Origin: Auanema rhodensis | Lineage: Eukaryota > Animalia > Nematoda | Assembly (NCBI GenBank): GCA_964057225.1 | Contig: OZ059900.1 | Location: forward strand, 5,952,001 to 6,016,000 | Direction of reading: 5' to 3' | Length of the DNA stretch: 64,000 nt | Part shown: piece by piece, positions 9,639 through 38,521 of the stretch | How positions within the stretch are numbered: the first letter of the stretch is position 1 | Layout of the letters: every line of letters starts with the position of its first letter | Made by a program: the position numbers and the translations under genes | Notes under the pieces: generated by a model | Seen by the model: the letters and a program-made list of their open reading frames with translations, nothing else | The model's database searches: none | Told to the model about the DNA's origin: nothing

Positions 9639-12600
9639 ATGAGCAATAGTGAGCAGGAGCAGCCATTCTGGAAATCTCAAGATGATATTGTAATTTCGGG
9701 TGTTTCTGGACGTTTTCCAAGGTAAGATAAGAATTTTTCGCTTTAATATTCTTTAAATACTATAAGAAAACCTAAAACATCTCAAACAATGGGATAATGT
9801 TTAAAGAAAATTTTAAGTATGCTCTAATAAGAAATATTGCTCGAATGAGAAATCCAAATCAAATCAAATAGTTAACGTTCTGATAAAATATTTTTGAATA
9901 ATATTGGGGATTTCTTATAAATTTTCATTGTTTCAGATGTGAAAACGTAGATGAATTTGCTGAGAAACTTTTAGCTGGAGAAGATTTAATTACTGAGGAT
10001 GATCTCAGATGGCCACCTGGTTAGAACAGTTGACTGACTTTTGAATAATAAATACAATATATTAAGGATTCTATGATCTCCCAAAACGACATGGAAAACT
10101 CAAAGAGTTGAAAAAATTCGATGCTCAATTTTTCTCAGTTACTCCAAAGCAAGCCAACTATATGGATCCGCAAGTGAGAATTCTTCTCGAAGTAACTTTT
10201 GAAGCTATGGTTGATGCAGGTATGACTTACAATGCAAATAATCAGTTAACTCATTTCGTTTAGGTATCAATCCATACGACTTGCGTGGTTCTCGTACTGG
10301 TGTGTTTGTTGGATGTTCCGGCTCTGAGACATCTGCAGCTCTCACCCAAGATCCAGAAGCTGTAACTGGTTACTCGTTGACCGGATGTGTTGGTGCTATG
10401 TTTGCCAACCGTCTTTCTTTCACATTCAACTTGCAAGGACCATCTTTTTCGGTGGACACTGCTTGTTCTAGTTCTCTTTTAGCTTTACAACTGGCTGTTG
10501 ATTCCATTCGTCAGGTACGGATTTTTATACATATTGATAGTGTTCATCGAAACTTTTAGGGACAATGTGATGCTGCTATTGTTGCTGGATCTCATTTAAC
10601 TCTCACACCAACAGTTGCTCTGCAGTTCTTAAGACTTGGAATGTTAACCGACAAAGGAATGTGCCGTTCCTTTGATGACAACGGCGATGGTTACTGTCGT
10701 ACTGAAGGAATAGCTGCTATTTTCATCCAGAGAAAAGAGAAGGCTCAACGTCTTTATGCAACTATTCTTCACGCAAAATCTAGCACTGATGGAAATAAAG
10801 AACAAGGAATTACATTTCCTTCCGGAGCTAGACAAGCTCAACTTCTCGAAGAAGTATATGGAGAAGCTAATATCAACCCAAATGATGTTTATTATGTAGA
10901 AGCTCATGGTACTGGAACTAAGGTATGTCATTTAAATAAATTTTGTTTTAAAACGTGAATGATTCAGGTTGGAGATCCTCAAGAAGCTAATGCTATCTGC
11001 CAAGTATTTTGCTCTAACCGAACCGAACCTCTCTTGATTGGTTCAGTTAAATCCAATATGGGTCACGCTGAACCTGCTTCTGGTCTTTGTTCAATCGCTA
11101 AGGTAAAAAATAAAAAAATTGTTAAAACAGTTATATTCAATCTTAGATTCTTCTATCCATTGAACGTCGACAAATTCCACCTAATCTTCATTTTGAAACA
11201 CCAAATCAATATATTCCTGGATTAGTAGACGGTCGCCTGAAAGTTGTTACTGAACCAACTCCAATTCATGATGGAGCCATTATTGGAATAAACTCTTTCG
11301 GTTTTGGAGGTTCCAACACTCACGTTGTTCTCAAAGTCACTGATCACGCTGCGAAAGAACACCCCAAGTCATCCTTCCCCAAAGTTCTCACCTATTCTGG
11401 AAGAACCAAAGAAGCTATTGCCAATGTTTTCGAAAATGTTGAAAAGCATATGGACAATACACATCTTCAATCTTTGTTATCTAACCAGGCCAATATGCCA
11501 GCCAAGGATTGTCCATTCAGAGGATACATGATCATGTATCGGGATGGTGATGTAGCTCCACTTAAAGACATTCAGAAGGTTAGTTATTCTAAAGATGGGT
11601 ACGGTAATCTTTATTCTTTTACAGGTCAGTATTACTGAAGCAAGACCTGTTTACTTCATTTATTCTGGTATGGGATCCCAATGGCCTGGAATGGCTCAAA
11701 AGCTGATGTGCATCCCATTGTTTGACAATTCTCTTCGTGAATCAAGCAAAGTGAGCTGGCAATATACTTGTAATCGTTATATTCTTCTTATAGTGTCTTG
11801 AAGAGTTTGGACTTGACGTCTACAAAATGCTTTGCAACTCTGATCCTGAGCAATACAAATCGAATACATTGAATTGCATGTTGGCCATCACTGCTATTCA
11901 AATTGCTCTTACTGACGTTATGTATGCTCTTGAAGTTACTCCTGATGGAATCATTGGACATTCCACTGGAGAAATGGGATGTGGTTATGCCGATGGATGT
12001 ATAACTCGAGAACAAACAATGCGTCTTGCTTACCACCGTGGTACAACTATGATGAAACACAAAGAGATTACTGGTGCTATGGCTGCTGTTGGTCTTACAT
12101 GGGAAGAAGCTACAGCCCAATGCCCAGAAGGTGTTGTTCCAGCTTGTCACAACGGAGCTGATTCCGTTACCATTTCTGGTACTGCTGAAGGAGTCGAAAA
12201 AATGGTTAAAGATTTAACTGACAAAGGAGTGTTTGCAAAGGTATTTTACTTCACCAATTCTGATATGAGAATTTGAATTACAGATGGTTGACTCATCTGG
12301 TATTCCTTTCCATTCTCCTATGATGGCTAAGGCTAGAGAGCCTATGCTGGAAGCTATGAAAGTAGCAGTTCCCCATCCTAAGCCCCGTACATCTAAGTGG
12401 ATTTCCACCTCTATTCCTGAATCGGAATGGGAAAGTGACTTGGCTGCTACTTGGTAACAACAGTTTCAATTTCATATTTCACTAAAACTTTTTATTTCAG
12501 TTCTGCTGATTACCATGTTAACAACGCATGCAGTCCTGTACTTTTCTATGAAGCTCTTCAAAAAATTCCAGCAAATGCAGTTACTATTGAAATGGCTCCT

Positions 12601-15600
12601 CATTCGCTTATGCAGGCGGTTCTCCGTCGTTCATTGCAAAAAACTTGTACGAACGTTGGCTTAATGAACAGACCCAGAAGCGAAAATGATAACGAACTTG
12701 AGAGCTTTTTATCTGTAAGTTTGATTTTTTTAGTTTATACTAACTAAAAACAATTCTTTCAGTCCGTTGGTAAAATTTTCCAATCTGGAGCTTACATTCG
12801 CGCAGAAAATCTTTACCCTGAAGGACAATACAAAGGTATTGTACCTAAGGGAACTCCTATGATTGGACCAATGTGGAAATGGGATCACTCTGTGGATTGG
12901 CCAGTAGTTGATGGACGTATGATGACTGGTGGAGCTGCTGGATCTATCCCAGCTTCAGCTACGTACAATATTGATCCATTCGCTGCTGATTCGAAGGAAG
13001 CTTACTTACTTGATCATTGTATCGACGGCCGTGTACTTTATCCTTTCACTGGATACATGGTTCTTGCTTGGAAAACTCTTTGCAAACTGAGAGGAGTTGA
13101 TTTCCAAAAGACTCCAGTCGTTTTCGAGAATATCAATGTGTTTTCTGCTACACTTCTGACGAAGCCAAGTAAGCCGTGATTTCAAATAATCTAATTTTCT
13201 TGCCCATTTCAGTCAAACTGGATGTTATTCTTACTCCTGGAAATGGACAATTTGAAATTATATCAGAAGAACAAGTTGCAGCTTCTGGTAAAATCTACAT
13301 CCCAGACGAAGACAAGCCTTTCTACTATCACAATTTCAACGCTATTCGTACTTCGGAGTTAGCTGATCGTATTGAACTAGATACTGAGGATTGTTACAAG
13401 GAGTTTTTGTTGCGTGGATATGAGTACGGACAGGCGTTCCGTGGTATTTTCAAAACTTGCAACTCTGGAGAACGTGGATATCTTTATTGGACTGGAAACT
13501 GGGTGACATTCCTTGACTCCCTTCTCCAAACCGCCTTGTTGGCAGAACGGTTAGTGTTGGAAACTTGGTCTTTCTGACTTTTTATTTCAGATCTGATACT
13601 TTGCGGTTACCAACAAGAGTACGTCATCTAAGAATTGATCCTGTTAAGCATTTGGAACATGTAGTGGAAAGAGACGGCATTCAAGTTATTGAGCTTCGTA
13701 ACGATCATGCCACCAACGGTTGTATTGCTGGAGGTGTTGAATGCTGTGATCTTAATGCTCATACCGTTCAACGTCGGTTACAAACAGCGGGACAACTTTA
13801 CTACGAGCGTATTCACTTTGTTCCACATGCTGATGATGCATCATTTTCGGACAAAGCTTTCCATAAAGAGAGGGATACTTTGATTGAATATAAAGAATGT
13901 CTTCGCAACGGTAGAATTTGTTTTTCTTCTTTTTTTCAAATTTATAATTTTAGTTATCGCGAATGGATTGAAAAACTGGGTTGCAAACAACGGACGCTTA
14001 GAAGCTTTCACAAACGGACTTCGCTTGAAACAAGTAGCCGATATGCTATCTAAAGTTCCTAACATTGACAGTACCATCACTGATAAATTCCTTGGTGATT
14101 CGAAGTGCGCTGTGCTGCACAGATTGAATGACTTATTCAAATTGGATTGGCCATCTAGTGGATCCCCTGATTTTGAAGAATTCCCTCAGAAAGTTTCTGC
14201 TACCTTGAACTCTGTCAAAGCTATTTTTGACACTGATCGTCTCTGGGCTGCAGCTCTCACTCAAGATCGTATACTGAAAACAGTTCAAGATATTTGTTTT
14301 GAAAACTCTGCTGGACACAATATCAAACTCGGAGGTGTAGAACTCACTTCTACGGAACAACTGAAACAACTTTTGGATTCTTGTAACTCACATCCTCTTC
14401 TCGAGGTAGACAGTCTTTGTGTAGGACCTTCTGTTGACCAACTTGATGAAAACACTTTGGAGCAACTCGGTGCTCGTAAACTGAAAGTTAACATTGATAA
14501 GAACTTCACTGGACAAGGAGATGCCAAGGCTCGCGATTATCTTCTCATTGACAAAGTTCTCTGCAAAAAGGAAGACCCTGTCTCTTTCTTAGAGAGTTGC
14601 AAGCATCTAATGCGTGATGATGGACTGGCTATTGTCGTTGAAGTGACTTCCGATTACGACATTGCCATGGCGGTTCACGGACTTCTCGGAACTGAATTGC
14701 CTTCTGTGGAGGGACGTCAATACGGGTTATACTACACTCATGAGCAACTCATTGACATCTTTGAGAAGGCCGGGTTCAAAATCTGTGGATATCAAAAAGA
14801 TTCCTCAATCATGTCAACTGCTTATGTAATTCGTAAAATTCCTGCAGTTGTAAGAGACCCAGCATTTGTTGACGTTGACGATATTGTAAACTTCACCTGG
14901 ATCGATCCTCTTCAAAAACTTATTGAAGAACGTTTGAACGAACCTGATAACAAAACTATTTGGTTAACATCTACAAAGGTAAAGCTCCCCCCCCCCGCCC
15001 TTCAACATACTAATCACAATTGTAATTATAGGCAAGAAATAATGGAGTTGTTGGATTATCCTTGTGCTTCGTCGAAGAAAATCTCAAGAATAACCGCTTC
15101 CGGTCTATCTTTGACATGTCTCTGAAGAAGGAAAACAGAACTGGACCAGCAAAACTGACTTTAGAACAAGAAGATGTTAAGAAGATTATCGATCTCGACC
15201 TTCATGCTAACAACTATCGTGATGGTGTTTGGGGATCTCTTCGTCACTTCGTTGTTAAAGAAGGTAATATCTATTGATTAGAAAGTCATTTTGAAATATT
15301 ATTTTCAGAAGATACTCATGTTTTCAAGCAGTGTGAACATGCCTTCATCAACACTTTAACTCGTGGTGATGTCAGTTCTCTCACTTGGTTTGAGTCTCCA
15401 AATCAGTTCTTCAATGCTATTGAGAACAGAAAGGAATCTCAAGAATTATGCTCCGTCTATTATTCTGCAATCAACTTCCGTGACGTTATGCTTGCTTATG
15501 GAAGATTACCTCCTGATGCAATTCCTGGAAACTTTGCTGATAGAGAATGCTTACTTGGTATGGAATTCTCTGGACGTCTGAAGGATGGAACTAGACTCAT

Positions 15601-37967: not shown

Positions 37968-38521
37968 TTGTTGTTGTAATTTGGAACACTATCATTATTT
38001 TCTAATTCTTGAAAAGTTTTATTATCTCATAATTGCTAATTTCGTTTTTTTTGTTTTTGTTTACACGGATTACTGTTCTGAGTGTGTGATTGTTTTCACA
38101 TATTTTTTTCCGCCAAGTTTTTCCACGACTGTACTTTATTTTTGAAATGAAGTGATAAATGTTTTGAATATTGCCGCCTCTAGTTGGAATTATTTTGACC
38201 GAAACACTACAGTATAAGAAGAATGGAACGTCACGTTCATGTATTATAGTTTGCTATCACTATAAGGTCAAAGAATACTTGATCAAACCAGTAGGAGTAG
38301 TTGGTTCCTACACTGTTGCTGATCTACTGTTGATCTACGGGAAACGCTTTATTAGTCATCATTATTTTCATTTACTCTCATTATAACCGATCATTGGATT
38401 AGAATAATTTTTATTTATTTTTTTTCTATTTCTCTTTTACTTTATCTCTTTATCTGTCATTGATTAATTTGTAGGTAAATTGAGTTTAACATTGCAAACA
38501 AATCAGCTTTTGAAAATTGAA

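Follow-up and report, generated by a model that had tools for sequence, protein, structure and literature searches.

Why should a nematode carry two complete fatty acid synthase genes side by side, and what keeps them identical over kilobases while short patches between them have drifted far apart? C. elegans has one fatty acid synthase (FAS) gene. In a 64,000-nucleotide (nt) stretch of the Auanema rhodensis genome (contig OZ059900.1, positions 5,952,001 to 6,016,000 of the forward strand; hereafter the window), two full-length FAS genes, here called A and B, lie in direct orientation on the + strand. When the two halves of the window were compared by blastn, copies A (9639-18593) and B (29029-37988) were returned as a single alignment with 95.4% identity over 8984 nt. 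We consider it likely that the pair is a tandem duplication, in this lineage, of an ordinary nematode FAS gene of the fasn-1 type, with gene bodies homogenised by conversion and with regulatory subfunctionalisation of the copies.

Gene models were built with a dynamic-programming splicer that scores codon usage and GT..AG sites. From ATG to stop, gene A spans 9639..18572 (+), as supported by the gene model, Pfam and transcript contigs of sequencing runs X16 and X17, and by polarisation it is the more ancestral-like copy. Gene B spans 29029..37967 (+), as supported by the gene model, Pfam and RNA splice joints from runs X5 and X6, and by polarisation it is the faster-evolving copy. Each has 22 exons, with the same exon lengths in both copies, and an open frame of 2603 aa; 2478 of the 2604 aligned codons are identical (stop counted), and the proteins are 95% identical. 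The first intron measures 215 nt; the 20 others, whose acceptors are of the nematode TTTCAG type, measure 41-53 nt. Pfam recognised KS, the KS C-terminal extension, MAT, DH, pseudo-methyltransferase, ER, KR, ACP and TE in both copies; the DH and pseudo-methyltransferase matches were weak and under the cut-off, and are supported by PDB alignments to FAS DH. Both proteins thus have the animal type I domain order on one polypeptide, KS-MAT-DH-pseudo-methyltransferase/pseudo-KR-ER-KR-ACP-TE, and share it, along with the catalytic motifs, with human FASN and C. elegans fasn-1. Their domains could be aligned to human, pig and Drosophila FAS in the PDB, and a palmitate-forming FAS activity is predicted for both A and B.

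Similarity between the copies starts at the ATG and stops about 20 nt past the stop codon in a global alignment, so the A and B promoter regions are unrelated. Neither the 5' nor the 3' flanks of A and B could be aligned by blastn or global alignment, nor could the 10.4-kb intergenic spacer (18594..29028, no strand assigned), and these unrelated flanks rule out two haplotypes placed in tandem. The spacer holds B's separate promoter region; by blastn and alignment it shares no homology with the sequence upstream of A, its open reading frames carry zero Pfam domains, and an Rfam scan of the whole window returned zero matches.

Within the gene bodies, identity in 100-nt sliding windows alternates between blocks of 100% and patches of 57-88%. 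The longest difference-free runs are 1037, 803 and 740 nt, introns included. When the 432 A/B differences were placed uniformly at random 2000 times, the longest identical run averaged 133 nt and reached at most 277 nt, and the observed differences per 100 nt have a variance-to-mean ratio of 17.8. Uniform divergence between A and B is excluded. The 1037-nt block (A 9897..10933, equal to B 29287-30323, +) runs from within intron 1 into the start of intron 5, taking in KS exons 2-5 and the whole of introns 2-4, and is a very recent conversion tract. The identical-run scan placed the 803-nt block at A 11513..12315 (B 30903-31705, +), over the end of the KS-MAT linker, most of MAT and introns 7-9, and the 740-nt block at A 17568..18307 (B 36960-37699, +), over TE exons and introns 19-20, ending just inside intron 21.

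The introns follow the same pattern. Identity is 98-100% in sixteen of the 21 and 91-100% in every intron other than 12, 13 and 14, where it is 73%, 60% and 55%, respectively. Homogenisation therefore takes in silent sites as well as introns, with synonymous divergence (dS) of 0-0.02 in whole domains, and this argues against constraint at the protein level as its cause. The initial annotation, a reading of the sequence alone, had described KS, most of MAT, ER, most of KR and TE as near-identical with their introns (intron 1 is identical at 211 of 215 positions), and the three introns of the DH/pseudo-methyltransferase region as strongly diverged. Both descriptions hold, and every peptide string that it quoted was located in its place. 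The sliding-window and intron comparison that it had proposed as a check confirms the mosaic.

The identical tracts are longer than the overall divergence predicts, the mark of conversion between paralogs. Saturated synonymous and intron divergence directly adjoins kilobases of identity, and a recent duplication with local adaptive change cannot explain this. As read from the sequence, the pattern is one of repeated conversion tracts of different ages laid over an old duplication. That history was already proposed in the initial annotation, and it is borne out by flanks, three introns and core-island synonymous sites that are saturated with change beside identical kilobase blocks.

Nei-Gojobori estimates by region resolve the layers of this mosaic. 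The converted part of MAT has dS 0 and non-synonymous divergence (dN) 0; KS and TE have dS 0.01-0.02 and dN 0.003; ER, KR and the C-terminal pseudo-methyltransferase have dS 0.04-0.10 and dN 0-0.013. Values then rise through DH (dS 0.28, dN 0.044), the ACP linkers (dS 0.41, dN 0.037) and the MAT patch at aa 700-745 (dS 0.91, dN 0.136) to the N-terminal pseudo-methyltransferase at aa 1137-1265, where dS is saturated (2.3) and dN is 0.28. This is a graded series, with at least four tract age classes in one gene pair. In the large islands dN/dS is 0.09-0.16, so both copies are under purifying selection.

Windows, introns and rates delimit the main divergence island (A 13076..14272, B 32466-33665, +), which takes in the latter half of DH, extends ~130 aa into the pseudo-methyltransferase and contains introns 12-14. 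In its core, 13772-14172, the lowest 100-nt windows are 57-64% identical. In protein terms, the largest island begins right after the last DH strand; it spans about 130 residues at the start of the pseudo-methyltransferase and holds 53 of the 126 replacements (~40%). Smaller islands lie elsewhere: the MAT island (A 12308..12445, B 31698-31835, +; aa 700-745) directly after the PFHS motif; an island at the C-terminal end of the pseudo-methyltransferase (A 14778..14924, B 34171-34317, +; aa 1449-1497), where rates give a dN/dS of about 0.47; a KR patch (A 16544..16657, B 35936-36049, +; aa 2005-2042) with a dN/dS of about 0.55 from small counts; and the KR-ACP and ACP-TE linkers (A 17074..17560, B 36466-36952, +), which have dS 0.41 and dN 0.04 around an identical ACP core.

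Polarised with nematode outgroups, 48 replacements are derived in B and 23 in A (binomial p = 0.004). The excess in B is found in DH (12 vs. 4), KR (4 vs. 0) and the ACP linkers (4 vs. 1), while in the MAT island derived changes are symmetric (4 vs. 4). The KR patch has six replacements; the four informative ones are derived in B without exception. In DH, the B-derived changes S1057A, L1058V and T1061S surround the DxxxQ motif. Polarisation with distant animal FAS was uninformative (5 vs. 6).

We next consider the age of the duplication. A word search with the ER-KR exon found the FAS of Cylicostephanus goldi and Necator americanus at 86% and three more contigs at 75-85%; in ER and KR, identity to hookworm and cyathostomin FAS is 84-88%, and full-length identity to bird FAS is about 43%. 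An exhaustive search of representative sequences with the same exon gave best matches of just 58-62% (birds, ticks, mites and insects), the nematode relatives being concealed within clusters formed at 50% identity. An ESM Atlas look-up returned generic ER-KR clusters only, and a word search with the pseudo-methyltransferase exon gave only six distant matches, full-length FAS proteins being outside its length window.

Necator and two related nematodes have one FAS gene at the locus, against two in tandem here. A 40-kb Logan contig (L001/L004) carries a single compact FAS, and neither the 14.7 kb upstream nor the 6 kb downstream holds another; a second locus (L002/L003) has a single FAS followed by an astacin gene and an ABC transporter gene; and Necator scaffold KI660186 (L005) has a single FAS followed by an astacin/CUB gene. 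A and B resemble each other more than either resembles any of these three single genes, which places the origin of the pair in this lineage. Across the core island, A-B identity is 58.9%, identity of the two copies to L001 and L002 is 35-38%, and L001-L002 identity is 47%; the duplication, or the last conversion of this segment, therefore post-dates the split from these genera. The event is still old, the A-B Poisson-corrected distance being about half that to L001. No flanks of the relatives' FAS genes were found in the 64-kb window, which indicates that the pair sits in a rearranged or repeat-rich neighbourhood.

Two observations concern the relatives' loci themselves. The order FAS then astacin-type protease, seen in Necator (L005 about 24900-25650) and in L002 (about 16900-19600), is a conserved synteny. 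About 1.2 kb past the Necator FAS stop, L005 15117-15597 holds a fragment like the last TE exons (aa 2473-2528, 58-88% identity), either a relic of partial duplication or alternative 3' exons.

Are both genes used? Runs from four studies, filed under three organism labels, contain both core-island versions at 0.97-1.0 of the words sampled. We aligned contigs of four runs from one study (X5, X6, X16 and X17) to B 31600-37400. These runs are transcriptomes: their contigs skip exactly the 11 predicted GT..AG introns of this interval, B introns 13 and 14 included. A-type contigs occur in all four runs, and B-type together with A-type contigs in X5 and X6, where the B-specific pieces include island 33346-33539; by index, X7 holds the patch as well. 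In X16 and X17 solely A-type contigs were assembled, and contigs demonstrate presence but cannot demonstrate absence. Compared with B, the X16/X17 contigs show 4, 40 (plus 4 gaps), 3, 1, 21, 33 (plus 2 gaps), 7 and 0 differences in successive exon pieces; assembled A compared with B over the same pieces shows 4, 46, 3, 1, 21, 36, 7 and 0. From this agreement, independent transcripts reproduce the A haplotype over 4.2 kb. B contig depth is roughly half that of A where B occurs, and the distribution is suggestive of condition-specific expression of B. The initial annotation had allowed that one copy might be silent; both genes are complete, and the RNA contigs show them to be transcribed and correctly spliced.

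One splice deserves a separate description. B intron 13 (32940..32984, +) is 45 nt long, in frame and stop-free, and its retention would add 15 residues. Its acceptor, CTAG, is weak, and a TTTCAG lies 12 nt upstream of that site. The 45-nt splice is seen in RNA contigs of two runs. Intron 15 of both genes contains a run of 9-10 C followed by GCCC (A 14987-14996; B about 34380-34388), unusual for an AT-rich intron, and the one-base length change of this run is the intron's sole A/B difference.

The explanation that we favour would start from an old tandem duplication of a housekeeping FAS gene in this lineage. Repeated non-allelic gene conversion, acting on DNA and taking exons and introns together, would then have kept the gene bodies alike. 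Restricted to the conserved gene body, it would have left flanks and promoters to diverge past recognition, and tracts of different ages would have built up the layered mosaic. The oldest island joins the least constrained part of the protein to three short introns; it is probably too diverged for conversion to start in it or pass through it, and it could persist without any selection for difference. A would be the ancestral-like, generally expressed synthase. B, with its own promoter region, gathers replacements at about twice the rate of A and is still under purifying selection. The likeliest function of the pair is regulatory subfunctionalisation, with B giving extra or condition-specific FAS capacity, and with at most mild tuning of its DH and KR; new product chemistry seems less likely.

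This process is well known from other tandem pairs, and concerted evolution and interlocus conversion in such paralogs have been treated in general (PMC3790853). The gamma-globin genes HBG1/HBG2, RHD/RHCE and the red/green opsins likewise have kilobase tracts identical through their introns, sharp shifts to old sequence and conversion within the gene body. The FAS pair differs from them in being very large (9 kb, 22 exons), in encoding a multidomain enzyme and in having at least four tract age classes. It is a clean example of a known process, and no new kind of enzyme is shown. A literature search, with incomplete coverage, found no description of a nematode FAS pair or of a FAS conversion mosaic.

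Several points weigh against this explanation. The relatives compared carry one FAS at the locus; the classic proof of conversion is segment-wise tree discordance, and here conversion is read from tract lengths and homogenised silent sites. Pseudo-methyltransferase aa 1266-1448 and TE are equally fast between species, yet fully converted, so low constraint alone does not predict where the islands lie. The two small patches with dN/dS near 0.5 have changes derived in B, and B-derived changes flank the DH DxxxQ motif; there may be some weak selection for difference in DH and KR. On the expression side, B's lack in X16 and X17 rests on assembled contigs, the sample metadata are coded, and strain differences may contribute.

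Could it instead be selection that holds the islands apart, with A and B yielding different products (lipids that are branched, hydroxylated or specialised in another way) and tracts that erase the difference being purged? Of the alternatives this one survives best, and we regard it as unlikely. In its favour, the divergence profile peaks and then decays on both sides, as it would around a selected site, and adjoining fast-evolving segments were converted all the same. The clustering of B-derived replacements in DH and KR, a dN/dS of about 0.5 in the KR patch and at aa 1449-1497, and a B copy with separate promoter DNA that is assembled in some transcriptomes only also fit this view.

The catalytic machinery does not. 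A and B are the same in all motifs: KS Cys/His/His, MAT GHS and FHS, DH His and DxxxQ, the ER and KR glycine motifs, the KR Ser/Tyr region, ACP DSL, and TE GYSYG and GDH. The motifs [37 protein letters not shown], FLDxx[20 protein letters not shown] and GDHDTF occur in both copies, and in PDB alignments the DH His and DxxxQ positions line up with human and Drosophila FAS. Between A and B, we found no changed substrate-selecting or catalytic residue and no lost or gained domain. The replacements are conservative and mostly at weakly conserved positions, those of the MAT patch being symmetric as well. About 40% of them fall in the non-catalytic N-terminus of the pseudo-methyltransferase, which is barely alignable across animals; of all segments in an alignment with 42 full-length FAS proteins, it has the lowest conservation and is the hardest to align. 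In that alignment the mean top-residue frequency is 0.30 in differing columns vs. 0.48 (Mann-Whitney p = 1e-13), and unalignable columns make up 28% of differing sites vs. 7%. Finally, dN/dS in the large islands is far below 1. Selection for different chemistry, the cause to which the initial annotation had attributed the islands, thus finds little in the motifs, columns or rates to favour it.

Insects such as Drosophila (FASN1, FASN2, FASN3) likewise have more than one FAS gene; there the expression of one copy is restricted, and the paralogs have been proposed to supply special lipids (PMC8027674, PMC5039406). Insect FAS paralogs, however, are diverged over their whole length and unhomogenised, whereas the A and B proteins are 95% identical with the same catalytic motifs. 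The sacoglossan mollusc synthases EcPKS1 and EcPKS2 (PDB 9cq1, 9ctk) belong to a fold family common with A and B, and have altered or lost reducing functions and other substrate use; none of this is seen in A or B. EcPKS1 (9cq1, E = 2.6e-4) is the only solved structure matching pseudo-methyltransferase exon 15 (13956-14978), with no mammalian FAS match, and this reflects the poor conservation of the segment. The description of the pair as polyketide-like in the initial annotation is not supported, since the catalytic and specificity motifs of A and B are identical. Its suggestion of specialisation fares better in part: the chemistry speaks against it, and B's roughly twofold excess of derived replacements, own promoter region and partial transcriptome presence give it some support.

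A more elaborate version would make B a condition-, stage- or tissue-specific isozyme. Its derived DH, KR and pseudo-methyltransferase surfaces would change how chain length or intermediates are handled, or how partners bind; the islands would be preserved because conversion there is selected against, and heterodimers with A would form where the two are co-expressed. Taken as a whole, we think this distinctly unlikely. KS and ER form the main dimer contacts in the known FAS structure. A and B differ at three KS residues, two of them residues 2-3, and at none in ER; with these contacts near-identical, A/B heterodimers are plausible.

It is improbable that B is simply redundant, drifting to loss under relaxed constraint and repeatedly repaired by conversion from A. 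Derived replacements in B are twice those in A and B is unassembled in two of the four transcriptomes, as this would lead one to expect. Against it, B retains an intact 2603-aa frame with all splice sites used, and its contig depths are about half those of A where it is present. In the long-unconverted island, where dS is saturated, dN is just 0.28, so B itself is under purifying selection.

We give very little credence to a recent duplication in which a hybrid ancestor, or a third and divergent FAS, supplied the islands through conversion or introgression. Such an import would likewise give old islands in a young background, and nothing specific points to it; the flanks and 3' untranslated region are already unalignable, which speaks for an old duplication, and dS is graded and does not fall into two classes. 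Least credible of all is an assembly artefact (tandem-placed haplotypes, a collapsed repeat or chimeric identical blocks), since, even if mis-assembly could yield kilobase 100% blocks and short-read contigs cannot phase islands across them, haplotypes would share flanks and these copies do not, both island versions recur across studies and organism labels, B-specific spliced contigs exist, and runs without an assembled B contig match the A haplotype exactly across 4.2 kb.

The remainder of the window is rich in repeats. Downstream of B, 41246-47104 contains 18 copies of a 327-nt unit, 98-100% identical with the last copy at 91%, preceded by a degenerate 146/293-nt repeat at 39936-41252. Direct repeats at 48264-50297 and 59320-61358 are 99-100% identical and about 11.06 kb apart, and a further pair (55496-55795 and 63129-63428) lies with them in the window's last 16 kb, where the repeat structure is complex.

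In the A. rhodensis pair, conversion tracts of several generations are layered within a single 9-kb, 22-exon gene. The pair offers a convenient natural test: do the divergence islands of converting paralogs require selection, or can neutral escape produce them? It also carries a practical warning: short-read assemblies and protein clustering at 90% identity will merge A and B. Nematodes are usually treated as having a single cytosolic FAS, and the closest database relatives of this clade V worm are strongylid parasites. A separately regulated second copy would matter for lipid metabolism, the cuticle and signalling lipids; if B were indeed a specialised isozyme, it would be the first specialised second FAS described in a nematode.

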